DNA of 64,000 nucleotides, from contig NIVC01000110.1 in NCBI GenBank assembly GCA_002269645.1, forward strand, positions 310,001-374,000. Reading direction: 5' to 3'. The DNA comes from Macrostomum lignano (Eukaryota). Below, in pieces: positions 24,345-57,895 of the stretch. A program made the translations under genes and the position numbers. How positions within the stretch are numbered: the first letter of the stretch is position 1; every line of letters begins with the position of its first letter. A model generated the notes under the pieces. That model saw only the letters and a program-made list of their open reading frames with translations, did no database searches and was not told where the DNA came from.

Positions 24345-24411
24345 AGAGGACAGATATGAGGGGTAGATTTGAGATAGATAGATGAGGGATATTTGAGGAT
24401 AGATATGAGAT

Positions 24412-24444
<33 letters not shown>

Positions 24445-27046: not shown

Positions 27047-27828
<782 letters not shown>

Positions 27829-31665: not shown

Positions 31666-32577
31666 ATGGCCCAATCGAGGCCGTTGCCCCCGATTCCGAA
31701 CTCCGGAGGTCTTGGCGATGTTTCAGTTCGCAATGCCAGATCTAACCTGCTTGAGGCCATCCGAGATAGTCGCCAGCTAGACTATGGCGAACTGCTGCAA
31801 ATGCAGATCAACCAAAAGTACAAGCTAGTGGATGCTCGCGCCGCCATGTCGGGTGACAAAAAATCAGCCGAAGACGTCAAGCGATCCTGCCTATTTCTGC
31901 GCAACAAGCTCAAGCACCTGCTGCGTCCAGAGAGAGACCGACCACCGGATTGGCACAGGGTGCAGGCCTCATTCTGCCAGTGCCTCTCGGGCGTTGACCA
32001 ACTATTAGAACGCATTGGTTTCGAGCGCAACGATCAGAATTTCACCATTACATCTGAACGATTGTCGAACGAAGCCCTTGTTGATACTCTCGTAGACTTG
32101 TACCTGCTGGCTGAAGAGCTGAGCCTCATTATTAAGGATAACCATCCGTTGGGTGCTAAGCTTATCGCCAAGAATGAACAGCCAGCTCTTAGGCGTGCCG
32201 GACCCTCCGGGATGCAGGATAGAGTAAACGCAATGCAGCGCAAGCTCAACCAGAATTGCGACCTGTGCGGCGAGGTCGCGGCAACGGTGGCCTGCCAGGA
32301 GAAGCACTGCTCCAAGCGGCGCCTGTGCGAGAGTTGCGACGGACGCTGGCACGGGCATCCGGACCGGCGCAGTCATAATCGACGTAAAATCAGCGACGCC
32401 GTCGGATCCAACGCTGTGCGGTTGGTGCCACCGGGAGTGGTGGGACCTGCCAGTGTGCAGTTGAACTCTGGAGTTAGGAAGGTTGTGTCAAACAGTCAAG
32501 CGGTTAGTTATAAGTCTCAACTTGGTCTCATGGGTAATAATAGTCCAAATCTACCCCAACAGCAGCAGCAACCTGCG

Positions 32578-32609
<32 letters not shown>

Positions 32610-35226
32610 ACCTGCTGTTGCTGTGCCGCCTCCGAGGGTTCCACCGCCGCAGTATCCCGGACAAAAACCGCGAAATGTTTTACCTCAACAACAGCCACAG
32701 CAGCCACCGCGACAGCAGCCTAGCGATACCAGCGAGTCAGATGCCCGTGTAATGAAACTCAATGAGTTCATGATGTCGTTAAAGCCTATTAGCGAGGAGC
32801 GCAGCTTTTCGAAGCCAGCTGGCGACATTCGTCGACCGCCGACGCCTGAAGAAGAGTTTTTTGACTGCTCAGATCAGCTGCCTCCGCAGCCATCGCTGCC
32901 AGCTCCGCAGCCACCGCAACCGCCGCAACAGCCACAATCGATACCGAAGCCCAAGCCACGTCTGTCTAAATCAATTGTGCCGAAACCTGAGACACCTCCA
33001 CCCCCTCCGCAGCAGCAGTTGCCTCCAAGGCCCGTGCCTAACGAACCAACGGAAGCGAACAGTTGGCCTTGCCCCGTTTGTACGGCGCTAAATCCTATAG
33101 CCGAGACGAAGCTAATAAAAAGTAGCCGCGTCATATGCTCAGTTTGTTCGATGACTTGCGACGATCAGGAAATTATTGCAAAGGTCAAAAAACAGCAGCA
33201 AGAGCCAGCAGTAAAACAGCCGGAAGCTCCAAAGCAGGTGGAGATTCCAGATCGCGCACCACTGAAGCCTAAACAAGAGCCGCTGTCCAATGAACAAGAT
33301 TGGTCTTGCTCCGCATGTACAATGCTTAATCCCATTACTGCAAAGTCTTGCGCAATTTGCCAAACTCCACGCGAACTCGGTGGCAGTGACGGTATCAAGC
33401 TTCCCTTTGAGGTCAAGCCAGTAGCCCGTCAGCGAAATCCAGAGATGGAGGAGGCTGCAAACAGACAGCTGTTGAAGCTTATACAAGATATCGAATTTTC
33501 TGGCTTCGATGGTCGGTTGGGCCAGCTGTATTTGGTGGCAACTGCTGATGATGGCGCCCAGTCGGAGGCTAGATTCAAGGCCTGGGTGGCAGAAAAATGG
33601 CCGGCACTGATTGAGCAGGTCGGTTGCGAGGTAGCGAAAGTGCTGCAGGGTGATAATGCAGGTGTGCGACCCTCATTTGACGATATCGCATCTGCTGTGC
33701 TGGACAACACATGCGACCTTGAAGCGGCTATTCAGATGTGCGCCCAGCGTCACAAAGCAAAGGTCGCTTGGATTGCGGAGAACTGCCCAGAGTTGCTGCA
33801 GTCAGCCCATGAGGTGAACCTTGATTTTCAGGGCGATGGTGATTTTACTAATTTTTATCAAGCCGAAAACGAACGGGTCTTTAGAGATTTCGCACAATTT
33901 TTGTTCTGCAAGGAGGGCCAGGAGCCACCTAAGTTCGACAGAATGAATGGAAGTGAGACCTCCCTCCACTGTCTGATGGGAGAGTTCGACTTAAGAAAGA
34001 TTAGCGATGCTAAAATACTTTTTCAGCTTATGCAAAACAGCGAGTTTAAGGGCCGCGATCTTTACGACCTTGCAGAGGCTGCAAAGGGCAGCAATAACAG
34101 GTGCGATTATGTTGACTTCGTGAAAAGTTTCTTGGGGTGCGCGTGCAGTTGCTGTTCTGGAGAGTTTCCAAAGCACAAGTTATTGCCAATGGCTTCATGC
34201 CAGTGTGAGTTGTGCCATGAGTGCTTTCGTAACTTCGTAGCAACGGCTATGACAGGTGGCGGGCATGTCACAGATCTTTGTTGCCCGATGTGCCAAGTAC
34301 CCAATGCAAATCAAATAGAGGAGTTCGAAAGCCATTTCGGAATTCTTCTGCCACAGATCAAACAGATACAAGACTTTAAACAATCTGAATATAAATTTGA
34401 TGGAAACGTTGTTGAGCTTGTGGAGCAAAAGATCACAGAGTGGAATCTTATTCGAGATCCAAACTTTCGCTGGTGCAGCAGCTGTGGCTTTGGAATGGTT
34501 CTCGGAGAGATCATGATCGGTTTGAAGTTCCAATGTCCTAATTGTGAGGCCTTTACCTGCAAAGAGTGTAAAAAACCGTGGAAAGATCAGCATGAGGGCA
34601 TTGACTGCGACCAGTTTGAGAAGTGGCTGATGGACAATGATCCAGAATACCAGGAGAAAGGTGTTGGATTTTTTCTGCAAGCCAATGGCATTGAATGTCC
34701 TAATTGTGGCTTCCAGTACGCCCTAGCAAAGGGTGGCTGTCTGCACTTCACCTGCCGAATGTGCCGCTTTCAATTCTGCGCAGGCTGTGACGGCGAGTAT
34801 ACAATCATTCACGGCAGAGGCCTGAGTTGCAAACACCCGAGAGACTGTCTGTTCTACCTTAGAGACTTTGGAGTGGACCGGCTCCAGCAGCTGCTGAATT
34901 TACACAGAGTGGAGTTCGAGAGCGAAGCTGAGAACCCAGTTGACAAATGCGAAGTGATGGAGCAAAAGGAAGTTGGAAGCGGTTTGAAGGATGAGCCGTG
35001 CGGTGTCGACGTGAAACCGGGCCAGGCGAACCTGTGTGAGAAGCACTACATTGAGTACCTTGTATCGCTGGTGAACAAGCAAAAGCTGGATCCCGTCAGT
35101 GTGATGGCCGAAGGCGAGCTCAAGGGAGTGTGTCTGCGTGAAGGAATTGACTGCTCGGGAGTCGGCGAGAACAACGTGGCAGCCCTGCGAGCTTTGATTG
35201 CTCAGCAGAAGCCACTTGTGAAGTGA
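31666..35226 (+). CDS. RNF31: H1: full-length HOIP/RNF31-like RBR E3 ligase (PUB-like, B-box, 2 NZF, UBA-like, RING1-IBR-RING2-LDD), 1186 aa, single exon
   Basis: YALAKGGCLHFTC (catalytic Cys and His), HPRDCLFYLRD and LCEKHYIEYLVSLVN match human HOIP motifs. B-box LCESCDGRWHGHPDRRSH. PUB-like ELSLIIKDNHP. Confidence 0.93.
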
Positions 35227-36522: not shown

Positions 36523-36561
36523 ATGCATGCGAGAAAGAATCAATCTACGAGCAGTTGCAAG
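36523..36561 (+). CDS. Putative first micro-exon of H2 (MHARKNQSTSSCK)
   Basis: ATG to AAG|GTAATT is phase 0 and compatible with the acceptor at 36914/36915. No homology supports it. Confidence 0.3.
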
Positions 36562-36914
36562 GTAATTTTAGCATGATATTCTGCAAGTCTCTGATCGCTA
36601 TATACTCGTACCTCTGAAACTACTTATCCAGTGCCTTATTGATGATATTTAAAAAGAGCCTTGCCACTTTCTTAGTAGTTTACTAACGATGTGCTACAAT
36701 CGAAATTAATAACACCTGTAGTATGTTAGGAAGTCTCGTGTTTATATTTATTCTAATTTTTTGGTTTAAGAAGTAAACAATCCTGTAAGTTAGCTACCGT
36801 CATAGAAACGATTTTGCAGTTAGACCAAAACTTAAACCACAAATAGTCTAGTTCCTAGCTACCATTTCAAGTCGTAATCCTAACTAAGGACTGTATCGCG
36901 TACTTTTTTTCCAG

Positions 36915-39491
36915 GCCACATCGAGCGGCAGCAGCTCCAAACGTAGAGGCAATCATTCAGCCTCATTCCTGCTGCATCAGAATGAAAAACAAAAACAAAA
37001 AAGCCATAAAAACAAGGCAACTGTCAAGAAGAACAGCAGCAGCACTGCCACTTGGCGCTGCCGTCACTGCACCTACGAGAATCAGCTGGCTGAGACGCGT
37101 CGCACCGCCGGTTCTGGTCGACTCATCTGCGAAGTCTGCGGCAAATCTAGCGAGCCCGTTGGCGTTCACAACGCTGCACCGACTGCGGTTGCCGAGCACT
37201 CCGACTGTGGCGACTGTCCGCTGTGCCTGGAGTCGCAGCTGGCATTGCTGACAGTCCCTCTGTGCGGCTGTCGGCTCTGCAGCGACTGTCTGTGTAGATT
37301 CGTCCGAGTCAGCTTGCGCAGTCACGGCTCGGCTGACCGGCTTGCTTGTCCGGTTTGCAGCCGGCCAGATTCGGACACTCTGGCCGATCCTAGTTGTGAG
37401 TACTTTCCCCAGCTGCGGAGTCTGCTAGCGGGCCGGCTCAGCCGCGACCTAATGCAGCAGCTCGACGACAGGCTGCGCGACTGGCGTCTGGAGCGAAGTC
37501 GCAACTTCATGTGGTGCAGCGGCTGCGCTTTCGGCTTTGAAGTTGACGACAACGTCGAGGAGTTGGCGATCCGGTGTCCGCACTGCAGCAAGGAGACGTG
37601 CAGGAAGTGCGGCAAGGCGTGGCACGAGCGGCACCGAGGCGTGAGCTGCCAGCAGTTCGGCGAGTGGCGTCAGCAGACGGACTTGAGCGAGCGCGGACTG
37701 GCGCAGTTCCTGGAGAGTCGGGGCAGCTCGTGTCCAAAGTGCGGCTTCCAGTTCGAGCTGTCTCGAGGCGGCTGTCTTCACCTGACGTGCAGGCAGTGCA
37801 AGGCGGAGTTCTGCAGCGACTGCGGCAGTCTGTTTGTTCGACAGGAGTGCTGCGGCGGGAACAAGGGACTCCATTGCCACCACGGGTCGGAGTGCGTGGA
37901 GACGTTCAGAGACTGGCCGTTGGAGAAGGTTCGGCAGACGGCGCTGGAGCGGGGCGTTCAGCTGGAGCTTGTCGGAGTGGCGGTCGCTGGAGGTCGGTGC
38001 AGCATCCAGGAGCAGAAGGAGACATCAGGAGGCGGTCTGGAGGACGGGGAGTGCGGGAGGCCGGTCGTCGAGTCGGGTCTGTGCGAGTCGCACCTCAAGG
38101 AGGCCCTGGCCAGCGCCATGCGTGGCAGGAAAGTCAAGCAGGCAGTCACCGCCGCCGCCGCCCCTGCCGCATCTAATCCAGTGGAGTCAAAGCTCACTCC
38201 GATGCTCATCGAAATGATGACGCGCCTGCCTCCGCCGTTACTGCCGACTTCTACGCCGCAGGAGGCCGCTCCGCAGCAGCCGTGGATCTGCAGCCTGTGC
38301 CACAATGTCAACTCGCCGGTCAACGTTGAATCCGGTTCGCCTGCCAGCTGTGAGATGTGCGACTCACCAGCAGCTGCCGCTTCTGCGACCTCGAATCAAA
38401 GGCCTGGAGGTGGCACAACAGCGTTGCAGGCAGTCAGGACTTCCATACCTTCTGTGACTAACTGGTTCGCTCGGCCTCCACCGCCTCTGCTGCCGAATCA
38501 GAGCTTGAGACCGTCGCATTACAGACAGCCAATGCAGAGCATGAACTCAATGCAGCCAATGCAGCCAATGCAGAGCATGAACTCAATGCAGCCAATGCAG
38601 AGCATGAACTCAATGCAGCCAATGCAGAGCATGAACTCAATGCAGCCAATGCAGAGCATGAACTCAATGCAGCCAATGCAGAGCATGAACTCAATGCAGC
38701 CAATGCAGAGCATGAACTCAATGCAGCCAATGCAGAGCATGAACTCAATGCAGCCAATGCAGAGCATGAACTCAATGCAGCCAATGCAGAGCATGAACTC
38801 AATGCAGCCAATGCAGAGCATGAACTCAATGCAGCCAATGCAGAGCATGAACTCAATGCAGCCAATGCAGAGCATGAACTCAATGCAGCCAATGCAGAGC
38901 ATGAACTCAATGCAGCCAATGCAGAGCATGAACTCAATGCAGCCAATGCAGAGCATGAACTCAATGCAGCCAATGCAGAGCATGAACTCAATGCAGCCAA
39001 TGCAGAGCATGAACTCAATGCAGCCAATGCAGAGCATGAACTCACCAGTACCGCCAATGCAGAGCATGAACTCAACAGTACCGCCAATGCAGAGCATGAA
39101 CTCACCAGTACCGCCAATGCAGAGCATGAACTCACCAGTACCGCCAATGCAGAGCATGAACTCACCAGTACCGCCAATGCAGAGCATGAACTTACCAGTA
39201 CCGCCAATGCAGAGCATGAACTTACCAGTACCGCCAATGCAGAGCATGAACTCACCAGTACCGCCAATGCAGAGCATGAACTCACCAGTACCGCCAATGC
39301 AGAGCATGAACTTACCAGTACCGCCAATGCAGAGCATGAACTCACCAGTACCGCCAATGCAGAGCATGAACTCACCAGTACCGCCAATGCAGAGCATGAG
39401 CTCAAGAATGCAGCAGTTCACGAGCCCGTTTCAGCCAATAAATGCGACTCAACAGAATCTAAAATCTTACCACTATCAACAACAGAATTAA
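36915..39491 (+). CDS. H2: HOIP-like RBR ligase paralogue (NZF, RING1-IBR-RING2-LDD variant, NZF, M/Q/S/N repeat tail)
   Basis: The frame is open from the acceptor TTTTTTTCCAG| (36915), upstream of the ORF-track start at 37245. Motifs: WRCRHCTYEN, ELSRGGCLHLTC, LHCHHGSEC, LCESHLKEAL. Confidence 0.85.
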   Translation, partial: ATSSGSSSKRRGNHSASFLLHQNEKQKQKSHKNKATVKKNSSSTATWRCRHCTYENQLAETRRTAGSGRLICEVCGKSSEPVGVHNAAPTAVAEHSDCGDCPLCLESQLALLTVPLCGCRLCSDCLCRFVRVSLRSHGSADRLACPVCSRPDSDTLADPSCEYFPQLRSLLAGRLSRDLMQQLDDRLRDWRLERSRNFMWCSGCAFGFEVDDNVEELAIRCPHCSKETCRKCGKAWHERHRGVSCQQFGEWRQQTDLSERGLAQFLESRGSSCPKCGFQFELSRGGCLHLTCRQCKAEFCSDCGSLFVRQECCGGNKGLHCHHGSECVETFRDWPLEKVRQTALERGVQLELVGVAVAGGRCSIQEQKETSGGGLEDGECGRPVVESGLCESHLKEALASAMRGRKVKQAVTAAAAPAASNPVESKLTPMLIEMMTRLPPPLLPTSTPQEAAPQQPWICSLCHNVNSPVNVESGSPASCEMCDSPAAAASATSNQRPGGGTTALQAVRTSIPSVTNWFARPPPPLLPNQSLRPSHYRQPMQSMNSMQPMQPMQSMNSMQPMQSMNSMQPMQSMNSMQPMQSMNSMQPMQSMNSMQPMQSMNSMQPMQSMNSMQPMQSMNSMQPMQSMNSMQPMQSMNSMQPMQSMNSMQPMQSMNSMQPMQSMNSMQPMQSMNSMQPMQSMNSMQPMQSMNSMQPMQSMNSMQPMQSMNSPVPPMQSMNSTVPPMQSMNSPVPPMQSMNSPVPPMQSMNSPVPPMQSMNLPVPPMQSMNLPVPPMQSMNSPVPPMQSMNSPVPPMQSMNLPVPPMQSMNSPVPPMQSMNSPVPPMQSMSSRMQQFTSPFQPINATQQNLKSYHYQQQN
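38526..39398 (+). repeat. In-frame coding tandem repeat: 27-bp (MQSMNSMQP) then 30-bp (MQSMNSPVPP) units
   Basis: Directly visible; both unit lengths are multiples of 3. Confidence 0.97.
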
Positions 39492-40001
39492 ATCGCACAG
39501 AATCTAGACGGCAATGTTGAATAAAATACTTTGGACTTGTTCCAATAGTATTATGCAAGTATTTAGCTTCTAATTACTCAATATCCTTATCTAATGCAGA
39601 GTGATTTTTACCAATCTCTCAAGGAGTCTAATGTATTTAAGCTAGCATTTTTTCTCTCCAATCTCATCAAATTGTCTCCACACGCGAATGCAAATACTCC
39701 GATATATTTTAGTCAAATTATTAGATTTTTATTAAACATTATGTTTAATTCTCAGCCTAGCATTTCTATTAAAATGATTAATAGTTTTATCATGTGTTGT
39801 CAGACGTAAGCGTTAGATGACTTAGTTTAATTCTAAATTAGCTGCAAAGGCAAAAAAACGTGTGCTTCATTTAGTGCCGTGCAGTTCATATAGATATTAA
39901 TTTAATTATAAAACCAATAGCTGGGGAAAAAGCGTTCCATTTGTCAGTGTATCAACAATTTGCCCTAGTCCTATGGCCTAGTAACCTGGCTGTTTTAGAG
40001 A

Positions 40002-40350
40002 GGACCCGCAGTCCAGTGGTCCAGCGCGGCGCTCTGAAGTGCCAGGGGTCCAGGCTCGATTCCAAATGCAGTCGCGTTAATTTGGGGCTAAATTGGAATC
40101 TCGGCTTGGCTCTGCTCGTGCAATTAACGGTCTTGAGGGCCAACCCCCAGGGCACAGTGAAGTGTACATGCCTAACGATAAATAGAGTCAGGGCCGCTGT
40201 ACACTCCTGTGTGAGTGTGTGCCTGTGCGTATGACTGCGTACGTATCCGCGCGCTTGTGTGCCTGCTCAGGGGAGTCGGCGTAATGGGCAGCAATGCCTT
40301 TCGCTGGTTGTGTGACAATGTCGCTTGAAGTGCGCCACCTGATGCACACA
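40002..40350 (+). mobile_element. tRNA-derived SINE family A, copy 2
   Basis: GCAGTCCAGTGG (A box) and GGCTCGATTCC (B box); body shared with copies 1 and 3. Confidence 0.82.
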
Positions 40351-41100
40351 GCCCACTGACTCAGTATAATTATTGCATGGCTCAGTATGTCAACAGTACA
40401 ACCAGCAACATTGAGACACCAACGCTGAGACCAAAAAAGTGAAAAAGCAAGTGATTAAAACAAAAATACTATAAAGTTGCATACTTGCGTCTAAGACAAA
40501 AGGTCGCACAAGTTGCATTCAGCGACAGAATGCTGGATCGGTGCCTAATTTTGCACTAATAGCTGGTGAAAGCCATAAACCTTTGTTTAGTCAAAGTTTT
40601 ATATATTAACGAATGATAATGGCAGTTGTTTAATGGCAGGTTTAAGTATAATTCAATTACGATATGAGTGGTGGCAATCGTACGCTCGTATTTATTACAA
40701 TGTGCTCATTTTTATTTATTTTAGCTTTAATTTTGGTTGCGATACAACTGCTTGAATGATATTGGCACTTTGTGTGTTACACGCTTCATGCTTATCTATT
40801 TATCAGCTGATGTGTTATTACAAAGTGCCTATTTGTCTAAATAAATATCGATTATTTTTTCGAGCAATATTTCCGAAATTATAACTTTGCTATTTTTTTT
40901 TTACTTCAAAGCACAACCATTGCTTTTAGTGACTTAAAATTTGAACTTAGCGTAAAAATTTTTGAAAAAGGCTTAGGAGCTTTAGAATTTCGTTCCTATT
41001 CTAAATAGCTAGTTATATTTATTAACTCAAATCTTAAGATTTTTACGAGGCATACAACCACAAATGTAAATATCATTCATGTTGGATTGAATAATCTAGC

Positions 41101-42210
41101 ATGCCACACTTATCGCAGTGGCAGTGTCCGCACTGTACCTTCATCAATGATGGAGCACAGGGTCGCCAACTGCACAGAAGGCTCATCTGCTTAATGTGCG
41201 GAAAATCCACTGATTTCTCAGAGCTGAAGACATCTGCAGAGTGCCCCGTGTGCACCGACGACAAGAAGCTGGTCGAGGTTCCCCTGTGCGGCTGCGAGGT
41301 CTGCAGCGACTGTCTGTGCCAGCAGATCGAGGTGCGCCTGATGAACGACAGCTCGGTGTCGGTGCTGACGTGTCCGGTGTGCGACAAGCTGGACGACCGA
41401 GCTCTGACGGACACTTCGTGCGAGTACTTTCCGCTGCTTCGGAGGCTGCTGGCGGGCCAGCTGAAGCCCGCAGTGATGAAGAAGCTGGATGAGAGACTGC
41501 GCGACTGGCGACTGAAGCTGACGGACAACTTCTGCTGGTGCAGCGGGTGCTCGAACGGTTTCGAGGTGTCGGAGCACCACGACAGGCAGGTGCGGTGCCC
41601 GCACTGCGGCAAGGAGACGTGCAGGAAGTGCGGCAAGGCGTGGCACGAGCGACACCGAGGCGTGAGCTGCCAGCAGTTCGGCGAGTGGCGTCAGCAGACG
41701 GACTTGAGCGAGCGCGGACTGGCGCAGTTCCTAGAGAGTCGGGGCAGCTCGTGTCCAAAGTGCGGCTTCCAGTTCGAGCTGTCTCGAGGCGGCTGTCTTC
41801 ACCTGACGTGCAGGCAGTGCAAGACGGAGTTCTGCAGCGACTGCGGCAGTCTGTTTGTTCGACAGGAGTGCTGCGGCGGGAACAAGGGACTCCACTGCCA
41901 CCACGGGTCGGAGTGCGTGGAGACGTTCAGAGACTGGCCGTTGGAGAAGGTTCGGCAGACGGCGCTGGAGCGGGGCGTTCAGCTGGAGCTTGTCGGAGTG
42001 GCGGGCGCTGGAGGTCGGTGCAGCGTCCAGGAGCAGAAGGAGACGTCAGGAGGCGGTCTGGAGGACGGGAAGTGCGGGAGGCCGGTGGTCGAGTCGGGTC
42101 TGTGCGAGTCGCACCTCAAAGAGGCCCTGGCCAGCGCCATGCGTGGCGACAACAAGAAGCCCCGTGTAGGCGTTGCTAACGTCGCATCTTCAAGGCGAAA
42201 GCAAACCTCA
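41101..42210 (+). CDS. H3 exon 1: HOIP-like RBR ligase paralogue (NZF, RING1-IBR-RING2-LDD variant)
   Basis: WQCPHCTFIN and RBR-LDD motifs as in H2 and H5. Phase-0 donor TCA|GTAAGC at 42210/42211. Confidence 0.85.
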
Positions 42211-42296
42211 GTAAGCTATTCTAGAAGGTATATTTTGTCTTTGCACGTAGTAAAGAGATGTCGCTAACGTCTTGACGAATAACTTTCCCTATCCAG

Positions 42297-42686
42297 GGTG
42301 CTACTGGCGCCGGTTCCAGTCAGAAGACTAATCCTGGAAGCCGCAGAAAGCCACGCAACCACCTGTCCATCGGTGGCAAGGACTGGACTGTGGCCACTGT
42401 TGGCAAAGAGGCAAAGTTTACTTTAACGGACACCAAAGGCGTTGATAGAGGTCAACCATTTTTCCGTCTCGTACCGGAAGGCGTTGAAAGTGACGGTGCT
42501 CAAGTGCCAGTTCGATTCAGAATTGAAGCCTCCGAAGGCAAAGTGAAATACCTCTGCAGTTTTACTCCGAAAATGCCGGGAGTTCATCTGTTAACATTTG
42601 GCTTTGGCAATGTAACAATGGGCCGGTCGTACAGGGTGGAGGTTCGCGATCTAGCAGCAACTGATGGTGCCGTAGATGCAGGTTAG
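42297..42686 (+). CDS. H3 exon 2: filamin/ABP280-type Ig-like repeat
   Basis: Branch point GCTAAC and acceptor TTTCCCTATCCAG| (phase 0). ATVGKEAKFTL...YLCSFTPKMPGVHLLTFGFG...YRVEV fits the filamin repeat pattern. Confidence 0.7.
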   Translation, partial: GATGAGSSQKTNPGSRRKPRNHLSIGGKDWTVATVGKEAKFTLTDTKGVDRGQPFFRLVPEGVESDGAQVPVRFRIEASEGKVKYLCSFTPKMPGVHLLTFGFGNVTMGRSYRVEVRDLAATDGAVDAG

Positions 42687-43231
42687 TTTTGTTGCAATGA
42701 CTGGTTAGGTTTCAGTTGAAATCGTCTACTCAGACAAGATATTGAGACTCGAAGCAGATTTGTTTTTTTATTTAATAACAAGTTGGATAACTTTACTGAG
42801 GTGAATTTTTATTGGTTCAACTGAATGGCAGTTCGAGTTTCTGTTTGTTTGGATTAGAGTTTGGGACTCTAACTACTGTGGCTCTGTTTATGATTTTATT
42901 TCTATTACGAGTATTCGAACCAAAAAACCGAGGCGTTGGATTCGACTGACTGACTTTTCCTGTTGATGCGATCACGCAAGGGGGGTTTACCTACAGTCTG
43001 ATGTAATCAATGGTTTTAATCACATTGATGTTAACTTGCAAAGTAAGATGTTGATACAAGGGGAAGGCTTCAAGTAAGATGCTTCCGATGATTTTGAAAT
43101 CGCTCTAAAGGTCTGCTGTCTGGGCGAACCAGTAGTTCGGTCTGGTGTATGGAGGGGGGTGGTTTATTCTTTAATTGTTAAATCAGAGTAGTTCGGTTAG
43201 CTATTTCTGAGTTGGTCTATTAGAGGGTATA

Positions 43232-43515
43232 GTATCTTACTTGACTTGACTTAGCTTCAAGGGGTTTCGGGCATCTGGATAGAGCGGGAAGGCGTCGTCG
43301 CCCTATAGCTGCAGTTCCCGCCTCCGGAGAGTCCGGAAGGTGGATGGTCGCTCGCCCGGTAGCCCTTGGGTAGCGGACGAGCTGGCAGAGATTCTCCTGG
43401 CCGGAAAACGTCGGAAAGGTCTGGGTTTGGGCCGAAGTTGGTGAGCCTATCCTGAGTAAAGGCGGGGCATTCACAAATAAAGTGCTCCGCATTCTCAACA
43501 CCGGAGAGGCAAAAT
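43232..43515 (-). mobile_element. 5'-truncated non-LTR retrotransposon 3' end
   Basis: Minus-strand CLFCLSGVENAEHFICECPAFTQDR is the C-terminal CCHC knuckle typical of LINE ORF2. It ends in a short (AAGTC)n tail. Confidence 0.65.
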
Positions 43516-44817
43516 AAACAAATGGCAAAATGGTGTTTCACTTTGTAAATTACGGTAATGACGAGTAGGAACGAAAATAGATCACTTCATCAGAGTTTTA
43601 TTAATTGTGTCAAGTGGAGTAAAAGACTGTTTCTTAGCGCGAAAAACTTCTACCTTGCAGATCGGCATCAAGGGAAAGCCTACAGTCAGCGCAGGACTCG
43701 ACTAGAACTCCTGTCGAGTACAGGGCTTCCAACACTGCATTGAGAAATGTGATGGATTTATTCCAACCAATTTTGAGTGATTCAATGCTGAGTTGTTTTT
43801 GTAAACAAAAAGTTCAATTATTCCGTTTTTCAACACAGAATATACCAAAATATTCTCTGTGATTTTATACAATGGTATTATATTTTATAAACGTGATATT
43901 TACCTTAAATTTAAATGTATGATTTAAGACAAAGATAGCTGTGCTGTATCCATATAGTCTTTGTTTTTCATTATTAAGATACTCCAGATTTTGAATGTTT
44001 TGCTGTTAAAGCGTTTTGCTGAAGTGTTAATTTATAAGGTACGAAACGTTTTTGTTTTTGTTCTTTTCTCAACTTCAAATTATGGTTCACTGTGTGATGC
44101 GGTATCAAAACTCAGTTTTTAAAAAACTAAATCGTAATGAAACAGTCGTGAAAAATCAATAGTTTTGGTAAAGGTAGAAAACAATCAATGCACATTAACA
44201 GGTTAAAAGCATGGACAGGCACGAATACAGTAGTGCAACTCTCAGATAATACGGAGGACGTGACCTGCGCCACTGTGCTAGGGCTGGGTGTTGAGGCTAG
44301 GCGAGCTTAGGCAGAACTTCAATGATTAGTGAGTTTGTAGTCTAATTGGCATTTGTAGATTTTTTAAAGCACTTTTCTGGTTGACAACTACAGCACTTAC
44401 CGTATCATACTGAATGAGATGATTTTGTATTGCAGATGGTTTAAATTGCTCCTTAGCCTTTAGGGTAAACAGCTGACTTTGGTTTCCCCAGTGGGAATAC
44501 CAAAACTTTGTTCTTTTTCGTTGCCAAATAAGCTCGACAATTCATCTCAAAGTGCTAAATGCGTTGAAATATTTATTGACTTTAATATTTATTATTTACT
44601 TATTAATTCTTTATATCGCCTAGAAATCAACACCCTACCTGAATATTTCTCGAAAAAACCCTCTAGAGATCACTTTGTTTCTCTTTAGTTTATGCTCTCG
44701 TAGCTAGATTACTCAAACTTGTCAATCCACAGTTGCTCTTGATTGAGTTTAAAGCTTCTACCCTATTTCAATTTCAGCAGCGCTCCTGACCAACAAGCAA
44801 ACTTGGTTGTGCAACGC

Positions 44818-47800
44818 ATGGCTCACCGAGTGTTTGCTGAGCGCTGCCTCATCTGCAGCCGCCCAGGCGCCTCAATCCGGTGCCTGGAGGCCGGCTGCGG
44901 CTTCCAACTGATCTGCGAGTCCTGCCACATCAACTGGCACAGCGTTGAGAATCACCGAGTCGAGGTGCTGCCGCCGCCGCCTCAGGCCCAGCGTCGCTGC
45001 GACACCTGGCTGACCGAGCGACTCCAGGAAGTGAAGCAGCTCAGGGAGTTCAAGGACTTCTCTGATACTGACCTCATTGACTCAATCCAGTCTTGCGAGA
45101 AGGCCTGTGATGATGTGGTAGCTCTGTTAGCGCACTTGAGAAGCCAGTGTTGCAAGTGCTCAAAGCAGATGCCGCGTCACAAGCTGTTTCACATGGCGAC
45201 GTGCGAGTGCGAGCTGTGCTGTGGCTGTTTCTGCAGCTTCCTGTCCGGAATGCCGGGGCAGCTGGAGTGTCCGGTGTGTGGAGTGGCCTGGTCTGGAGAC
45301 CATGTAGCTCGAAACACGACTATGATTCTTGTGTACGAGCTGGAGTCTCAGCTAGGTAATGATGAGGCGGCGAGACTACTGCAGATGTTGGAGCAGCAAC
45401 AGAGCGACCAGCACCAGAGAGAGGAACAGGAGAGAGAAGAACAGCTGAGAGAACAGCTGAGAGACCAGCTGAGAGAGCAACAGGAGAAAGAAGAACAGCT
45501 GAGAGAACAGCTGAGAGACCAGCTGAGAGAGCAACAGGAGAGAGAAGAACAGCTGAGAGACCAGCTGAAAGAGCAACAGGCGAGAGAAGAACAGCTGAGA
45601 GACCAGCTGAGAGAGCAACAGGAGAGAGAAGAACAGCTGAGAGACCAGCTGAAAGAACAGCTGAGAGACCAGCTGAGAGAGCAACAGGAGAGAGAAGAAC
45701 AGCTGAGAGACCAGCTGAGAGAGCAACAGGAGAGAGAAGAACAGCTGAGAGACCAGCTGAGAGAGCAACAGGAGAGAGAAGAACAGCTGAGAAACCAGCT
45801 GAGAGAGCAACAGCAGAGAGAGCAACAGCAGAGAGAGCAGCAGCAGAGAGAGCAGCAGCAGAGAGAGCAGCAGCAGAGAGAGAAGCAGCAAAGAGAGCAG
45901 CAGCAGAAAGAGCAACAGCAGCAGCAGCAGCAGCGGAGAGAGCAACGGAAGAGAGAGCAGCAGCAGAGAGAGCAGCAGAATTCGTTCTTAGACCTGAAAG
46001 TGCGAGGTCAATTTCAAGGTCAAGATAAAGCAAATGATCTTTATGAGCAGCAGAGACAGTATCTCAATAATCTTCAGAAGCAGCAGAGAAATCCACAACA
46101 GGTTGCACTGCAGAGAGAGCAACAGCAGAGAGAGCAACTTGAGAGAGAGCAGCAGCAGAGAGAGCAACAGCAGAGAGAGCAACTTGAGAGAGAGCGACAG
46201 CTGAGAGAGCAACAGCTGAGAGAGCAACAGCAGAGAGAGCAACAGTTGAGAGAACAACAGCAGAGAGAGCAACTTGAGAGAGAGCAGCAGCAGAGAGAGC
46301 AACAGCAGAGAGAGCAACTTGAGAGAGAGCGACAGCTGAGAGAGCAACAGCTGAGAGAGCAACAGCAGAGAGAGCAACTTGAGAGAGAGCAGCAGCAGAG
46401 AGAGCAACAGCAGAGAGAGCAGCAGCAGAGAGAGCAGCAGCAGAGAGAGCAGCAGCAGAGAGAGCAACAGCAAAGAGAGCAACAGCAGAGAGAGCAACGT
46501 GAGAGAGAACAAAAGCAGAGAGAGCAGCAGAAAGAACAGAATCGGCAACTACATGGGCATCATACAACTAATGTTCCTTCAAAAGAAACTTCTCAAAATT
46601 TCCAAGAAAACAATTTTCAAAGCAACGGCAGCTGGGTCTGCATGCACTGCACGCTGGTGAACCCGGCTCCGTCGCAGCCAGGCGCTGGGCTTAGGATTTG
46701 CTCTGCTTGCTCACAGACTACCGAACTCAGTGGCGGCGCCACTAAAGGAGGCGCAGTCGCTCGCAATGAAGCCGTTGCTGCTGCGTCCATGCTGACCTCC
46801 GCAGCCACAGCAGCCGCCAGTGATGCAGTCGGAGCGGTAGGAAGCGATTCCAGCACAGGCTTTATTGAATGGTCCGATAGAACTCAAAACCTGGCTTCGC
46901 AGCTCAGAGTAGAAGACTGGGTTGCAGAGAGAATTCTGGCTGTCAAAAGTATGCCCAAGTTTAACGAGTTTTCCGAATCAGACCTTGTAGTTGCGATTGA
47001 GTCGTGTGGCGGCCTTGCGTTCGAAGACGACGCTCTGATGAGCCAACTGCGTCGCAAGTGCAGCCGCTGTTCGAATGAGTTGCCACGTCACAAACTTGTT
47101 GCAATGGCAGCATGCGAGTGTCAGATGTGTCCAGAGTGTTTTCGAAAATTTCTTCTTAGACTGGAAAGCAGCAGGATTCAGTGCCCTGTCTGCCATTGTG
47201 TGTGCGATGATGAGGACAGTCGGGATTTTATGACTTTGCAGCTGATGGAAATGGCGGATGTGCTTGGCACTGACACTGTGGAGTATGCAGTGGCGCACAT
47301 TAAAGTCCTTGTGCTGGGAGGTGTTTCAAAAAAAAGTGATGATGAAGATTGGGTAAAGGTCGACGCTCAAGGTAAGAAAGGGAAAAACTCAAAAGCCTCC
47401 AAAGATGCCTCGACAGTTCCAGTAAACACTTCGAATGGTTATTGTCCTCATAGGAATGGTGGACTACCGAAAAGGGACACTCGACAGTGCGAAAGTTACT
47501 GCAAAGTTTGCAAACAGGATGTCTGCAAGAAATGTTTCGGCTTCTGGGTTGATCACCAACGGATGGACTGCAGCAGTTATCGGGATTATGCAGCAGGTAT
47601 TCAACAAAAAGGAGATTATAACGAAATGCACATAGCTGCTCAAAAGCAAGGCTTCTCGCCTACTGACGCAAACCTGCACGATCAGATGATGGAGCTTCTG
47701 ACTTTTGATTTGGTTTGCCCAGTCTGCAGTCATTGCTACCAACAAGTGTCCAAATCAGGAAGCCTTGTGTTTCACTGCAGATGTGGGCATTCATTCTGTC

Positions 47801-48309
47801 CATTTTGCCGAAGCCCTCAGATGAGACCTCACGACGTCTGCCCGATTAAGGGACTTCATGTGCACCACCATCGCCAGTGCTACTTTAATTTGAAGCAAGT
47901 AAAACAGACGACTCTACTCGGTTTGCTGAAGAGAAATAAGGTAAAAGTGAACGAAACATGCTCAAAGTTTGGCAAAGCGTGTCAGCTTCCTGATTTGAAG
48001 ATAGAACGAAAGTTGATTGGTGTATATCCTTGTACCGAAAAAGTTACTCATAAAAAACGAGGTATATGTGACAGGCACTACCGTGAGTATCTAATTCAGC
48101 TCATCAATGCGCACAAGCTCGATTTGGTAGATGTTGCCAATGAGAATGAGCTGCTGGAGATGTTCAAAAGGTTTGATTTGGCCCCACCGCAAGTCAAAGC
48201 CTCCAACCCTGCTTCTGCTGCGAGAGAGAAGATGAGAGTTTACCGCGAACGGCTGAAGGACATGGTGCCACCGCTGTTGGGTAGCAAAGAGAAAGAAGCT
48301 TTGGTGTAA
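44818..48309 (+). CDS. H4: catalytically inactive HOIP-like paralogue (B-box, extra UBA-like/RING1 module, Q/E/R coiled repeats, NZF, RING1-IBR-RING2*-LDD)
   Basis: The ORF is open from 44743 to 48309; the first ATG is at 44818. RING2 reads SKSGSLVFHC where HOIP has ARGGCMHFHC. LDD reads GICDRHYREYLIQLINAHKLD. Confidence 0.87.
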   Translation: MAHRVFAERCLICSRPGASIRCLEAGCGFQLICESCHINWHSVENHRVEVLPPPPQAQRRCDTWLTERLQEVKQLREFKDFSDTDLIDSIQSCEKACDDVVALLAHLRSQCCKCSKQMPRHKLFHMATCECELCCGCFCSFLSGMPGQLECPVCGVAWSGDHVARNTTMILVYELESQLGNDEAARLLQMLEQQQSDQHQREEQEREEQLREQLRDQLREQQEKEEQLREQLRDQLREQQEREEQLRDQLKEQQAREEQLRDQLREQQEREEQLRDQLKEQLRDQLREQQEREEQLRDQLREQQEREEQLRDQLREQQEREEQLRNQLREQQQREQQQREQQQREQQQREQQQREKQQREQQQKEQQQQQQQRREQRKREQQQREQQNSFLDLKVRGQFQGQDKANDLYEQQRQYLNNLQKQQRNPQQVALQREQQQREQLEREQQQREQQQREQLERERQLREQQLREQQQREQQLREQQQREQLEREQQQREQQQREQLERERQLREQQLREQQQREQLEREQQQREQQQREQQQREQQQREQQQREQQQREQQQREQREREQKQREQQKEQNRQLHGHHTTNVPSKETSQNFQENNFQSNGSWVCMHCTLVNPAPSQPGAGLRICSACSQTTELSGGATKGGAVARNEAVAAASMLTSAATAAASDAVGAVGSDSSTGFIEWSDRTQNLASQLRVEDWVAERILAVKSMPKFNEFSESDLVVAIESCGGLAFEDDALMSQLRRKCSRCSNELPRHKLVAMAACECQMCPECFRKFLLRLESSRIQCPVCHCVCDDEDSRDFMTLQLMEMADVLGTDTVEYAVAHIKVLVLGGVSKKSDDEDWVKVDAQGKKGKNSKASKDASTVPVNTSNGYCPHRNGGLPKRDTRQCESYCKVCKQDVCKKCFGFWVDHQRMDCSSYRDYAAGIQQKGDYNEMHIAAQKQGFSPTDANLHDQMMELLTFDLVCPVCSHCYQQVSKSGSLVFHCRCGHSFCPFCRSPQMRPHDVCPIKGLHVHHHRQCYFNLKQVKQTTLLGLLKRNKVKVNETCSKFGKACQLPDLKIERKLIGVYPCTEKVTHKKRGICDRHYREYLIQLINAHKLDLVDVANENELLEMFKRFDLAPPQVKASNPASAAREKMRVYRERLKDMVPPLLGSKEKEALV
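45410..46530 (+). repeat. Coding Q/E/R-rich tandem repeats in H4 (42-bp EREEQLRDQLREQQ and 15-bp REQQQ units)
   Basis: Directly visible; the frame is preserved. Confidence 0.93.
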
Positions 48310-50353
48310 ATGTAGAACGTTGATGAACTAAACAGTTAGTCGAGCTATTCGTTCCTCCGCGGCTTTAACGTTGGATTTTAAACTGCCATGTTACAAAATC
48401 TAAAATTCGTATTTTGAGTATATGTTCAAATTATTGTTTTAAAATGTGTCTTATTTTTAGTTAAAACAACATGTATTTTCCTGATTTTTGTGAGAAGTCT
48501 GGTAAGTTTTTTATGTTCAATAACTTCTGACTTTTTATTTTATGCAAGTGATGAATGGTTTTTGGTTAATGGTTTTTTACTATTTTCTCCGTTTGTAGAC
48601 TTTAATTTTCATACTGTCGTTTACTTTTGTAATCGATATGTGGTGATGTAGGTCTCTCGAGGAAGTATTTTGATTACACTACCGTAGGCAAAGCATGCGT
48701 GTGTTTTATTGTATGAGTCACTTTACTCCCTCTGGGACAGCTTTGTGCACTCTGTGTACGAGTACTTTGCGTGCGTTTTATCTGCCCCTTCCTCTAGCCA
48801 GGGGCCTTTCACCCCGTCTTCGCTGTATGGGCGAGGGCCGAGGGGCGGGCGTCACTTGCGGCCGAATTTTTGTCTTAATTAAAAAATATTTTCTTGTAAG
48901 TTTCAGCGCACAATGCATTCTAGCTGCTCAAGCACTAAGAGCATTGTCAGAGACAAGTTTCGACAAGTAGATAAAAGCCACTTGCCAAAGTGAGCAGTGT
49001 AGGCAGAAACTGCTTGCTAGAAAGAAATCAAAGAAAGCACGTGTAAAAAGCATCGTTTAGTATTTTTATTATATATTTCCATTTTGTATTTGTTTCTCGT
49101 TGTTTTGATGTCCTTTCTTTTTTGTGTCGCACGACATTTGCAGGTACACAGTTAATTACATTTGAGTCAATTGACTGCGGAGACAATTAGTTGATTTTAA
49201 GCTTGTTCTATGAAATATGGCAGTAAAATGAATTAGCTTAAACAAGCAATCAATTGATGCTCAATCGATTTGTAGTGTATTTTGAAATCTTTCAATCGTC
49301 ACTACACGCAGTTGTTTGTAGGAAATTTTCGTGACACTATTTTTCGACTGCTAGTAAATAAAGTTTTCTTAAGTGTGTTCGTCAAAAGAGGTAAAGTGTT
49401 GTTTACACTGACATCAAATCAAATAAAGGTCCAATTTCGTGTGGTTACGCTCGTAACTCCTACAGCAGCTTTCATTCCTTTTTACATCGATAGTGCGACT
49501 TGATTGCTCATTCTATGACAATGTTAATCAGCCTTAATGATTTTAGTATTAAATTCTTGATTTGTTTAAAGTTTTTTTCAATATCCAATTTGTCTAGAAT
49601 TAGAATTATGTCTTCGCCTTCATAACAGAACGTTTTTCCAGTTACTGTTTTATCGCTCAAGTACACTCAGCAGAATGTTAAAGTTTCCACCTTGAGTGTG
49701 TACCAAGTATACCGGTATGCTCACTGTCTATACGTTTTTAAAAAGTTTCCAAACTAGGCCAATCAAATTTATTGTCCAATTATTTTTATCCAAGTTCATA
49801 TCTTTCTACAATCATTGATTTTTTTCATGTCAACAGCGGTATTTTTAACAAGATGGCTTAAAATATTTTTATAAAATATACTATTCAGATTTAAATTGCC
49901 TTCGCATTGCACTGCGAGTCTCAAATCGTTTTTTTCTTTATAAATTTTACATAGTAAAGTTTACGAAAATATTTAGATAATGGTAGAGGCCACTGGTACT
50001 ACTACGAGCTGCTAAATCACTATATATTCCACTCGCTATTGAATTAGATAGCAGCAGAAAAAGCTAAGCTTGCTACTGAAAAAGGTAAACATGGGGCGCA
50101 TTTTTAGCTGAAAAAGTATCTATAATCTAATAGAATCTACGATTATATTTAATGAGTATGATAGTACGAGTATATAGCAAGATTATATTAAATTGCAATG
50201 ATGTTTTTGAGTTGCTTAAACTTTTAGACATTTTTAATTGAATGCTTTTCGACGTATTATTAAACTGATTACCTTTTCAATTCAAAGTTAGCTAAGTTTT
50301 GTTTAAATGAACTCATTGCAGCAAAGGTTTGCAAGCTTGCAGCACCAAATCGT

Positions 50354-52267
50354 ATGGCATCAGCTAGCCAAAACATTGAGTGGCAGTGCCAGCACTGCAC
50401 ATTTATCAACTCGGCAATGTGCGACACTTCCAATCCTAAAAGTCGCATCATCTGCAGCGTGTGTTCCAAGTCAGTCTCTTGTCGGGAGCTTCTGGATCTG
50501 CACCAGCGACAGCAGAGAGCACAGCATCTTAAACGGGCACCCAAGCCAAAGCCTCTTAAAAATCAACATCACAGGCAAAGCTTTGACGATGCATCCTGTG
50601 ATTCGTGGAGTTTACGAGACCCCGAAACGGATACAGCGGCCGAACCTTTCAGAGACATGTTTCAGCGATTTTCGAGGACCCGGATGAGCGAGACAAGCAG
50701 CTCCTCGGGTCTCCGAAGACGCATAGGAGAAGAGCAGGACCGAGGTGCTGTAGAAGCGGATGACATTTTCACTAGGAGTTTGGAGCCATTTCACCCTACT
50801 CACGGTGTTACTCAAGGTATGCTGCAGTGGGATCAAATTCGGCCAGTTCAAAAGTCGTCGCTCAGAGCAATTTCTGTTCGAAACTCCAAAGCATCTCCAA
50901 TGGAAACTACTGTTAGCAAAGAGTGCCCGGTGTGCATCAACAACAAGAAGCTGGTCCAAGTTCCGCTGTGCGGCTGCGAGGTCTGCAGCGACTGTCTGTG
51001 CCAGCAGATCGAGGTGCGCCTGATGCACGACAGCTCGGTGTCGGTGCTGACGTGTCCGGTGTGCGACAAGCTGGACGACCGAGCTCTGACGGACACGTCG
51101 TGCGAGTACTTTCCGCTGCTGCAGAGGTTGCTGGCGGGCCAGCTGAAGCCCGCAGTGATGAAGAAGCTTGATGAGAGACTGCGCGACTGGCGACTGAAGC
51201 TGACGGACAACTTCTGCTGGTGCAGCGGGTGCTCGAACGGTTTCGAGGTGTCGGAGCACCACGACAGGCAGGTGCGGTGCCCGCACTGCGGCAAGGAGAC
51301 GTGCAGGAAGTGCGGCAAGGCGTGGCACGAGCGGCACCGAGGCGTGAGCTGCCAGCAGTTCGGCGAGTGGCGTCAGCAGACGGACTTGAGCGAGCGCGGA
51401 CTGGCGCAGTTCCTGGAGAGTCGGGGCAGCTCGTGTCCAAAGTGCGGCTTCCAGTTCGAGCTGTCTCGAGGCGGCTGTCTTCACCTGACGTGCAGGCAGT
51501 GCAAGGCGGAGTTCTGCAGCGACTGCGGCAGTCTGTTTGTTCGACAGGAGTGCTGCGGCGGGAACAAGGGACTCCACTGCCACCACGGGTCGGAGTGCGT
51601 GGAGACGTTCAGAGACTGGCCGTTGGAGAAGGTTCGGCAGGCGGCGCTGGAGCGGGGCGTTCAGCTGGAGCTTGTCGGAGTGGCGGGCGCTGGAGGTCGG
51701 TGCAGCGTCCAGGAGCAGAAGGAGACGTCAGGAGGCGGTCTGGAGGACGGGGAGTGCGGGAGGCCGGTGGTGGAGGCGGGTCTGTGCGAGTCGCACCTCA
51801 AGGAGGCCCTGGCCAGCGCCATGCGTGGCAACAAGAAGAAGGACCGTGTAGGTGCGCCGGACTTTCTGGCTGGCCCTATGAGCAGTAAGGTGGGCAAAGC
51901 GCAGCGACCTACATCTGGGCCTCTAGTGGCACCATCGAAATCTTTGAACCCGGGTCTCACCCAGCGTCCCATGCGACTGGATTTTTTTTCGTCAAACAAT
52001 AAACCGAAGCTTAATTTTAATCGTCGCGATTTGTCACCCACATTGTCGGAGATTTCAACTTCAGTTGACTTTGCCTGCCCGCATTGCACCGCCGTGTCTC
52101 CAACTGCGCCCAGCGTATCCAATGGTTCGCGTGTTCTTTGCACTGTGTGCGGCAAAACCACACCTTCGAAGGGTGGATCGGGTGCAGATGGCGCTTTCAG
52201 TGGCTCGGATTCGATGTTTAACTCTTATGATGTTGATTTTGAAAGCTGTCTAGATATTTGGGATTGA
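50354..52267 (+). CDS. H5: HOIP-like RBR ligase paralogue (NZF, RING1-IBR-RING2-LDD variant, NZF-like), 637 aa
   Basis: Motifs WQCQHCTFIN, GGCLHLTC, LHCHHGSEC and a C-terminal FACPHC...VLCTVC. Confidence 0.87.
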   Translation: MASASQNIEWQCQHCTFINSAMCDTSNPKSRIICSVCSKSVSCRELLDLHQRQQRAQHLKRAPKPKPLKNQHHRQSFDDASCDSWSLRDPETDTAAEPFRDMFQRFSRTRMSETSSSSGLRRRIGEEQDRGAVEADDIFTRSLEPFHPTHGVTQGMLQWDQIRPVQKSSLRAISVRNSKASPMETTVSKECPVCINNKKLVQVPLCGCEVCSDCLCQQIEVRLMHDSSVSVLTCPVCDKLDDRALTDTSCEYFPLLQRLLAGQLKPAVMKKLDERLRDWRLKLTDNFCWCSGCSNGFEVSEHHDRQVRCPHCGKETCRKCGKAWHERHRGVSCQQFGEWRQQTDLSERGLAQFLESRGSSCPKCGFQFELSRGGCLHLTCRQCKAEFCSDCGSLFVRQECCGGNKGLHCHHGSECVETFRDWPLEKVRQAALERGVQLELVGVAGAGGRCSVQEQKETSGGGLEDGECGRPVVEAGLCESHLKEALASAMRGNKKKDRVGAPDFLAGPMSSKVGKAQRPTSGPLVAPSKSLNPGLTQRPMRLDFFSSNNKPKLNFNRRDLSPTLSEISTSVDFACPHCTAVSPTAPSVSNGSRVLCTVCGKTTPSKGGSGADGAFSGSDSMFNSYDVDFESCLDIWD

Positions 52268-57837: not shown

Positions 57838-57895
57838 TCTTTTTTATCAGATATTCTGATTTAAAAATTCTAGGTGTGTCGCCTAGTAGGGGGGA

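Follow-up and report, generated by a model that had tools for sequence, protein, structure and literature searches.

Altered HGSEC motif and shortened LDD in three HOIP-like paralogues of Macrostomum lignano that keep the equivalent of the HOIP Arg935-Asp936 pair

HOIP (RNF31) is, to our knowledge, the only ligase that makes Met1-linked ubiquitin chains, and its specificity is ascribed to the domain determining linear ubiquitin chains (LDD) as a whole, that is, to a first zinc finger (ZF1) together with a helical base. Here we examined a tandem array of HOIP-like genes in a 64,000-nucleotide stretch of the Macrostomum lignano genome (assembly GCA_002269645.1, contig NIVC01000110.1, positions 310,001 to 374,000 of the forward strand; hereafter the window), in which three copies, H2, H3 and H5, read HHGSEC at the place of the human HHPRDC motif. 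In the human protein, RING2-LDD is described as a scaffold of seven helices into which two zinc fingers are inserted (PMC5135002), Phe905 and Leu922 are the HOIPIN pocket (PMC7125101), and contacts of Arg935 and Asp936 with acceptor-ubiquitin Glu16 and Thr14 have been reported, alanine mutants of the pair abolishing linear chain synthesis. The invertebrate HOIP orthologue LUBEL (CG11321) of Drosophila needs neither HOIL-1 nor SHARPIN to make Met1 chains; its catalytic cysteine is Cys2704, and Arg2754 and Asp2755, the equivalents of Arg935 and Asp936, are needed for activity (PMC5090701). Acceptor chemistry can nonetheless diverge among RBR ligases, as HOIL-1 makes Ser/Thr oxyester bonds (PMC7246992).

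Six long open reading frames on the + strand, at 31.6-56.7 kb of the window (H1 to H6), are all HOIP/RNF31-like, and a seventh, H4-like copy (H7) begins near 62.0 kb and is cut by the end of the stretch. Their closest database entries are Macrostomum lignano hypothetical proteins (95-99% identity), and those for H2, H3 and H5 are named solely "hypothetical". An exact look-up of the H5 product returned no record, and a literature search for M. lignano together with RNF31 found none. The sequence HHGSECVETFRDW starts at 37878 in H2, 41899 in H3 and 51581 in H5, exactly as an initial annotation of this DNA had described, and is identical in all three; GGCLH lies 111 nt upstream of each HHGSEC, with 32 codons between the intact GGCLH and the motif. 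At the same place, H1 and H6 read HPRDC-LFYLRDF. The features of the three genes are as follows (coordinates are those of the whole stretch).

36523-39491, + strand: GenBank transcript-based model of H2 (871 aa)
36933..39491, + strand: main coding exon of H2; frame open from 36888 (no ATG), the open reading frame being listed from 37245
37215..38126, + strand: H2 RBR and minimal-LDD core, CPLC to SAMRG; catalytic Cys codon 37773-37775, His codon 37779-37781
37617..38126, + strand: putative gene-conversion tract of H2 (second half of IBR, RING2 and LDD), 95-100% identical to H3 ~41638-42147 and H5 ~51320-51829
37767 (start), + strand: GGCLH of H2
37878..37895, + strand: HHGSEC of H2, corresponding to human His925-Cys930 (HHPRDC), with Pro927Gly, Arg928Ser and Asp929Glu
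37908..37913, + strand: Arg-Asp codons of H2, corresponding to human Arg935/Asp936, kept
41101..42210, + strand: exon 1 of H3, with an NZF-like finger (41119-41199), RBR and minimal LDD; GTAAG donor at 42211; open reading frame 41101-42267
41242..42147, + strand: H3 RBR and minimal-LDD core; GGCLH 41788-41802, catalytic Cys 41794-41796
41899..41916, + strand: HHGSEC of H3
41929..41934, + strand: Arg-Asp of H3, corresponding to Arg935/Asp936, kept
~42297 (start of exon 2) and ~43660-43743 (last exon), + strand: remaining H3 exons; the spliced product is UniRef A0A1I8HUB4 (P0002)
50354..52267, + strand: H5 open reading frame (637 aa), with an NZF-like finger (50381-50464), linker, RBR, minimal LDD, predicted disordered linker and C-terminal NZF-like finger (52073-52150)
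50924..51829, + strand: H5 RBR and minimal-LDD core; GGCLH 51470-51484, catalytic Cys375 51476-51478, His377 51482-51484
51581..51598, + strand: HHGSEC of H5
51611..51616, + strand: Arg420-Asp421 of H5, corresponding to Arg935/Asp936, kept

We placed these residues on human HOIP by setting the GGCMH cysteine of the 5edv_A chain to 885. This anchor recovers Cys699, Cys702, His887, Gln896, Phe905, Cys916, Leu922 and Cys930 as they are named in the literature (PMC7125101, PMC3463842), and it maps the human HHPRDC motif to His925-His926-Pro927-Arg928-Asp929-Cys930. Arg935 and Asp936 are then the RD of Leu931-Phe932-Tyr933-Leu934-Arg935-Asp936-Trp937, seven positions past the changed motif. A phmmer alignment of H5 residues 189-492 with the human RNF31 RBR-LDD (5edv_A; E=6e-53) sets hhPRDcLFYlrdw opposite hhGSEcVETfrdw, so that H2, H3 and H5 keep the acceptor pair as VETF-RD-W. 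LUBEL provides an independent check of this mapping, since the spacing from the catalytic cysteine to the Arg-Asp pair is +50/+51 in both human HOIP and LUBEL; in H5, whose ZF1 insert is 5 residues shorter, it is +45/+46. The initial annotation had located Arg935/Asp936 within HHPRDC and had read the change to HGSEC as replacement of the linear-chain acceptor site. Under Cys885 numbering the first of these placements is wrong, and the second fails with it, as the pair is present at 37908-37913, 41929-41934 and 51611-51616. A GS-to-PR revertant, which had been proposed as a test, could not bring back Arg935/Asp936, since these residues have been present throughout. From the alignments, the predicted acceptor-ubiquitin contact pair is retained in all three genes, and what has changed appears to be a remodelled and shortened specificity domain and not a lost acceptor site.

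Next to this pair, the catalytic machinery of H2, H3 and H5 is conserved. Every Cys/His column that reaches ≥93% conservation among 33 full-length homologues is kept, the zinc ligands of RING1, IBR and RING2 are complete, and the Pfam IBR and IBR_1 matches lie above their cut-offs. The equivalents of the catalytic Cys885 and the general-base His887 are both kept (73/73 homologues for each residue), as are the ZF2 ligands (Cys969, Cys986, Cys998 and His1001) and the donor-tail hairpin residue Asp983, in a region where strands are predicted at a pLDDT (predicted local distance difference test score) of 79-92. Position 896 is Glu in the three genes and likewise in 29/73 homologues. With human HOIP (5EDV, 4LJO) they thus share the RING1-IBR-RING2 order, GGC(L/M)H, the ZF1 histidines, the ZF2 ligands, Asp983 and Arg935/Asp936, and with LUBEL, too, the Arg-Asp pair. 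PF18091 matches above cut-off and the best PDB and Foldseek matches assign H2, H3 and H5, as predicted proteins, to the HOIP/RNF31 family. The RING1, IBR and RING2 Cys/His residues and the donor-tail hairpin make a transthiolation-competent RBR plausible. To this extent the earlier proposal of an active ligase stands as plausible, the catalytic Cys/His, RBR zinc ligands and Asp983 all being in place, but the reason given for a changed acceptor, loss of Arg935/Asp936, does not. Retention of the LDD zinc ligands, which had also been asserted, holds for His923, His925, His926, Cys930 and every ZF2 ligand and is uncertain for the ZF1 cysteines, which are an adjacent CC pair.

We then compared the altered positions with other family members. 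Pro927 and Arg928 show no variation among the other HOIP homologues (72/72), from sponges to humans, and position 929 is D or N in 69 of them; Leu931 to Leu934 are near-invariant, Arg935 is present in 71/72 and Asp936 in 72/72. Where the family reads HPR[D/N]C-[LF][FY]YL, H2, H3 and H5 read HGSEC-VETF, LFYL becoming VETF with loss of Tyr933 and Leu934. Among ~197 RING2-LDD sequences, which include the best 150 of 1.84 billion representatives, the GSE|VETF pair was restricted to M. lignano proteins, and position 928 was elsewhere always R, save for one K, and never Ser. The conserved hydrophobic residues Leu942, Leu945, Leu946 and Tyr1005 are also changed, to the smaller V, T/A, A and A. Our literature search on HOIP R928 found only a note from hydrogen-deuterium exchange (HDX) and no documented role for Pro927 or Arg928.

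The C-terminal side of the LDD is shortened as well. Homology of H2, H3 and H5 stops after ...HLKEALASAMRG, at about human residue 1012, so that the domain ends past the helix equivalent to human ~1000-1012, and the last ~60 residues of the helical base (~1013-1072), with the conserved Asp1016, Pro1017, Arg1032, Leu1053 and Leu1063, are missing; a literature search for HOIP R1032 found none. The PF18091 profile (RNF31 C-terminal/LDD) scores 26.7-29.2 bits against a cut-off of 23 and is covered over about positions 25-75 of 92, compared with 1-92 in H1 and H6. A missed intron as the source of the short LDD was ruled out: a tblastn search with the last 75-95 residues of H1, H4 and H6 as queries detected distal LDD helices nowhere but in these genes themselves, with no orphan exon near H2, H3 or H5; the spliced H3 product (P0002) runs on into unrelated sequence; and the H2 and H5 frames are continuous. 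AlphaFold2 modelled the H5 RBR-LDD core at a mean pLDDT of 82.7, with HOIP 5edv, 4ljp and 4ljo as the top Foldseek matches, and a model of H5 residues 340-637 contained three LDD helices, then a segment at pLDDT 30-40 (residues 496-570) with no structured substitute for the missing helices, and last a C-terminal zinc-finger-like element. The hydrophobic substitutions, taken with the loss of the distal helices, point to co-adapted shrinking of the helical base, and HGSEC is most likely part of this predicted remodelling of the LDD core and not a loss of acceptor contact.

ZF1 is a further point of difference. H2, H3 and H5 have His923 and His925, an adjacent cysteine pair (ECCGG) within a 19-residue insert and an extra Cys at 924, whereas most HOIPs have C-x4-C in a 24-residue insert. 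In sum, relative to human HOIP (identity ~31-39%), the differences are HGSEC, VETF, the 19-residue ZF1 insert, smaller hydrophobic residues, the missing ~1013-1072 helices, and the lack of PUB and UBA_HOIP. H2, H3 and H5 therefore lack two family-wide features, the HPR[D/N]C-[LF][FY]YL motif and a complete LDD, and ZF1 is an additional, uncertain one. The difference from LUBEL is of the same kind: its RBR-LDD is complete and highly conserved, with all zinc ligands, while H2, H3 and H5 are small (~500-870 aa) and carry NZF-like fingers directly beside the RBR.

These flanking regions differ among the three genes. H2 has the order NZF-like finger, RBR, short LDD, second NZF-like finger and M/Q/S-rich repeat tail, and the same RBR and mini-LDD cassette is joined to a different tail in each of H2, H3 and H5. 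The NZF-like fingers of H3 and H5 read W-x-C-x2-C-T-F-x-N, with T-Y in H2; the T-F motif of Npl4-type NZFs binds ubiquitin. No Pfam match to PUB or UBA_HOIP, which in the vertebrate LUBAC-type architecture serve the partners OTULIN, HOIL-1 and SHARPIN, was found in the three genes, and among the paralogues UBA_HOIP was detected only in H1 (E=1.4e-5). The H2 tail contains a coding 27-bp tandem repeat (38557-39405; ~30 copies, 95% matches) with the units MQSMNSMQP / PVPPMQSMNS, giving an M/Q/S/P-rich low-complexity segment. The C-terminal exon of H3 had been taken by eye as filamin/Ig-like, a candidate we dropped, as no Pfam match was obtained at E<=0.01.

The remaining members of the array served as an internal comparison and have the following features.

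31666..35226, + strand: H1, long HOIP-like paralogue with UBA_HOIP, NZF fingers, HPRDC and full-length LDD helices, without ZF1 ligands
44743..48309, + strand: H4, HOIP-like paralogue with GGCLH changed to SGSLV (no catalytic Cys/His) and RD changed to KQ; C-terminal LDD helices kept
55026..56627, + strand: H6, short HOIP-like paralogue; GGCMH and HPRDC present, PF18091 matched in full, no ZF1 ligands
61999..64000, + strand: H7, H4-like, running off the end of the stretch; 87.6% identical to 45972-47940; no catalytic Cys (SKSGVPVFHC)

In H4 and H7 the catalytic Cys and His are lost (SKSGSLVFHC and SKSGVPVFHC, respectively) and RD is replaced by KQ, although the HxxxC knuckle and the distal LDD helices are kept. 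As the Arg-Asp pair is lost where catalysis is lost and kept where the catalytic residues are kept, it is probably still used in H2, H3 and H5, and this pattern across the predicted proteins argues for continued use.

We favour the reading that H2, H3 and H5 would be functional RBR ligases, lineage-specific derivatives of HOIP whose LDD is minimal; ubiquitin would still be their acceptor, with Met1 orientation weaker or less exclusive. For this reading as a whole we estimate a probability of about 0.55. In such a mechanism, RING1 would dock E2~Ub and ubiquitin would move to the RING2 cysteine (Cys375 in H5), with His377 activating the incoming nucleophile and the ZF2 hairpin holding the donor tail. 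The Arg-Asp pair and a ZF1-like knuckle would present ubiquitin as the acceptor. With about half of the acceptor platform left, Met1 orientation would probably be weaker or less exclusive than in canonical HOIP, and the flanking NZF-type fingers and variable tails probably recruit ubiquitin or substrate.

Several observations weigh against this reading. In human HOIP every tested LDD mutant abolishes chain formation, and LDD-less constructs were not expressible (PMC3463842); acceptor positioning is described as needing both ZF1 and the helical base (PMC5413910). As the LDD is essential in the human protein, a truncated base and changes at invariant residues could abolish Met1 synthesis despite the kept Arg-Asp pair. 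ZF1 may not fold as in HOIP, its predicted ligands including CC and not C-x4-C. An HDX study assigns Arg928 to a turn that is not equally accessible to solvent in the bound and the unbound HOIP-RBR structures, and an invariant arginine on a mobile turn beside the active site could have a direct function that is lost here. Furthermore, the selection signals within the converted block described below rest on small counts, and the transcript models of the cluster are partly chimeric, so expression is not proven for each single copy.

The same alterations leave changed acceptor handling possible on grounds outside the initial annotation, namely loss of Pro927/Arg928, Tyr933/Leu934 and the C-terminal LDD base. 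In this alternative, the mini-LDD cassette would be an active thioester ligase with a new target; Met1 could not be positioned, and the thioester would be discharged to lysines (another linkage, or mono-ubiquitination of substrate or self), hydroxyls or non-protein acceptors, with the target set by the tails and NZF-like fingers and the Arg-Asp pair kept for another purpose. The replacement of Pro927, Arg928, Tyr933 and Leu934 by a GSE|VETF pair found, among ~197 sequences, only here, the absent C-terminal LDD helices when human HOIP needs an intact LDD for Met1 chains, and the joining of one cassette to three tails would all fit. HOIL-1 (RBCK1) and RNF216 share the RBR thioester mechanism and choose acceptors by RING2 appendages, but they are weaker structural and sequence matches, and the RING2 extension of H2, H3 and H5 is HOIP-derived (PF18091, ZF2 and the RD pair) and unrelated to theirs. 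We consider this explanation a tentative one, as Arg935/Asp936, His887, the ZF1 histidines and the donor hairpin are kept though their neighbours changed, the loss of the pair in the Cys-less H4 and H7 suggests that the contact is still under selection in H2, H3 and H5, and nothing positive points to any alternative acceptor.

It is also conceivable that H2, H3 and H5 perform only the first half of the reaction, taking ubiquitin from the E2 without building chains and acting as E2~Ub sinks, dominant-negative partners or scaffolds for other paralogues. Human LDD mutants behave in this way, discharging E2~Ub and forming the thioester without making chains (PMC3463842), and the cluster already contains the non-catalytic relatives H4 and H7. 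This seems unlikely, however, given that His887, which is needed only for the second step, is conserved together with Arg935/Asp936 and Asp983, and that purifying selection extends over the whole RBR-LDD core.

We then examined how the three copies are related. A 933-bp block is common to H3 and H5 (97% identity), and H2 shares ~730 bp with both at 91%. The similarity of H2 to H3 and H5 is uneven along this length: in RING1, identity is 48-82%, with a synonymous divergence (dS) of ~1.0, a ratio of non-synonymous to synonymous divergence (dN/dS) of 0.34-0.36 and fewer non-synonymous than synonymous changes per site (Fisher p=2.6e-4), whereas from ~37617 to 38126 (~500 bp) identity rises to 95-100% and dS falls to 0.03-0.05, after which similarity collapses. 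The sequence pattern indicates a block, comprising the second half of IBR, RING2 and the LDD, homogenised by gene conversion or recent cassette exchange. The three HGSEC motifs would thus represent one evolutionary event, and their identity is no independent sign of constraint.

Four more HGSEC-type copies were present in homeologous clusters, three on NIVC01000762.1 (L002) and one on NIVC01000691.1, bringing the set to seven copies on three scaffolds, with all frames and every zinc ligand and catalytic residue intact. Across these, dN/dS was 0.15-0.44 in the RBR core (pooled homeologue test p=4e-7), with little divergence among copies in the converted block (dS 0.02-0.06). In one of the copies on NIVC01000762.1 (21003-22728), a third of H5 type, a Q/E-rich tail resembling that of H4 (KKKKLREQQQNQQ...) is fused to the HGSEC cassette behind ...SAMRG, further evidence of cassette shuffling between tails. 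The same copy has a one-codon deletion in RING1 (CEYFPLL to CEFPLL).

The set might instead represent young, redundant duplicates heading to pseudogenes in a neopolyploid, repeat-rich genome, with the motif change as neutral decay. M. lignano has undergone massive recent duplication (PMC5730564), the copies are little diverged in the converted block, and some annotations are chimeric or truncated. Yet seven intact frames with all zinc ligands and catalytic residues, a RING1 comparison between H2 and H3/H5 (dS~1, dN/dS~0.35) that implies long-lasting constraint, and the existence of transcript-derived gene models make neutral decay very improbable.

The GenBank models of M. lignano (Mlig_3_7) derive from an RNA-seq-guided transcriptome (PMC5730564), and such models exist for H1, H2, H3/H5, H6 and H7. 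They provide evidence of transcription from the cluster, though an imperfect one because PAA90426 joins H3 to H5. In this model (BOX15_Mlig019423g2, 494 aa), the H3 N-terminus is joined to the H5 RBR and C-terminus over ~9.7 kb that hold H4, so that H4 lies inside its "intron" and is for that reason not annotated as a gene. The high identity of the cassettes (97%) has probably made PAA90426 a chimera, with genuine long-range splicing as the alternative.

HGSEC orthologues were not found outside M. lignano: a word-index search returned P0001 and P0002 only, and an exhaustive HMMER search of 1.84 billion representatives placed all copies of this type in one 50% cluster. The next HMMER matches were P0084 (36% identity, E=1e-84), whose RING1-IBR array is repeated, whose RING2 end is short and which lacks an LDD, followed by H6 (39%). 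In a distance table, H2, H3 and H5 were nearest to H6 (Kimura ~1.14, compared with 1.2-1.3 for other HOIPs), with weak support.

H1 and H6, which share the array and the strand with H2, H3 and H5, had been taken as the comparison for Met1 synthesis. They keep HPRDC-LFYLRD and full PF18091 matches, unlike H2, H3 and H5, but as a reference they are imperfect, since both are without the ZF1 ligands Cys911, Cys916, His923 and His925. Between Cys901 and His926, H1 (34732-34850) and H6 (56133-56255) have an insert of 15 residues, not ~24, in which counterparts of Cys911 and Cys916 are missing; at His923/His925, H1 has S/K and H6 has V/E. In the homeologue on NIVC01000762.1, the lone histidine of the insert is replaced by Gln. 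ZF1 ligands are otherwise near-universal, with short inserts like those of H1 and H6 in a few other proteins (P0135, P0200). In human HOIP, C916A abolishes chain formation, Cys916 and Cys930 being among the LDD mutants of Smit et al. (PMC3463842). A fully canonical RING2-LDD is found in no copy of this array. The array instead sets three natural partial versions side by side: half a base with an altered knuckle beside a complete catalytic centre and Arg935/Asp936 (H2, H3 and H5), a full base without ZF1 (H1 and H6) and a full base without the catalytic cysteine (H4 and H7). Should any of them prove active, they would reveal the LDD elements on which Met1 specificity depends and the role of Pro927 and Arg928; and if a mini-LDD acceptor switch were true, the array would be a natural dissection of the LDD elements that encode Met1 specificity.

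The annotated H1 product (31666-34833; 1056 aa) ends ...GLSCK just before HPRDC, while the genomic frame continues as far as 35226 (1186 aa) and 1184 aa are annotated for its homeologue on NIVC01000762.1, so the H1 annotation is probably truncated. H4 and H7 carry long E/Q/R-rich coding repeats with a 15-bp period (45391-46530 and 62136-62616), and their predicted proteins are probably pseudo-ligases or scaffolds.

Outside the array, a 21-bp satellite (GGCGCCAAAATGAGTGCCTGT) forms two large arrays in opposite orientation ~15 kb apart (1745-3474 and 18423-19528), and TCTA/AGAT/ACTA microsatellites occupy 1-552, 20010-20408, 23447-24476 and 27047-27826; together these repeats account for most of the long spurious open reading frames of the first 27 kb. 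Upstream of the HOIP array, an open reading frame at 21024-22841 on the - strand encodes C-terminal C2H2 zinc-finger motifs and proline-rich stretches and is a probable transcription-factor exon. Finally, an inverted pair of ~370 bp at 86% identity, one member between H2 and H3 (39999-40362) and the other downstream of H6 (57472-57840), probably represents fragments of a dispersed repeat.

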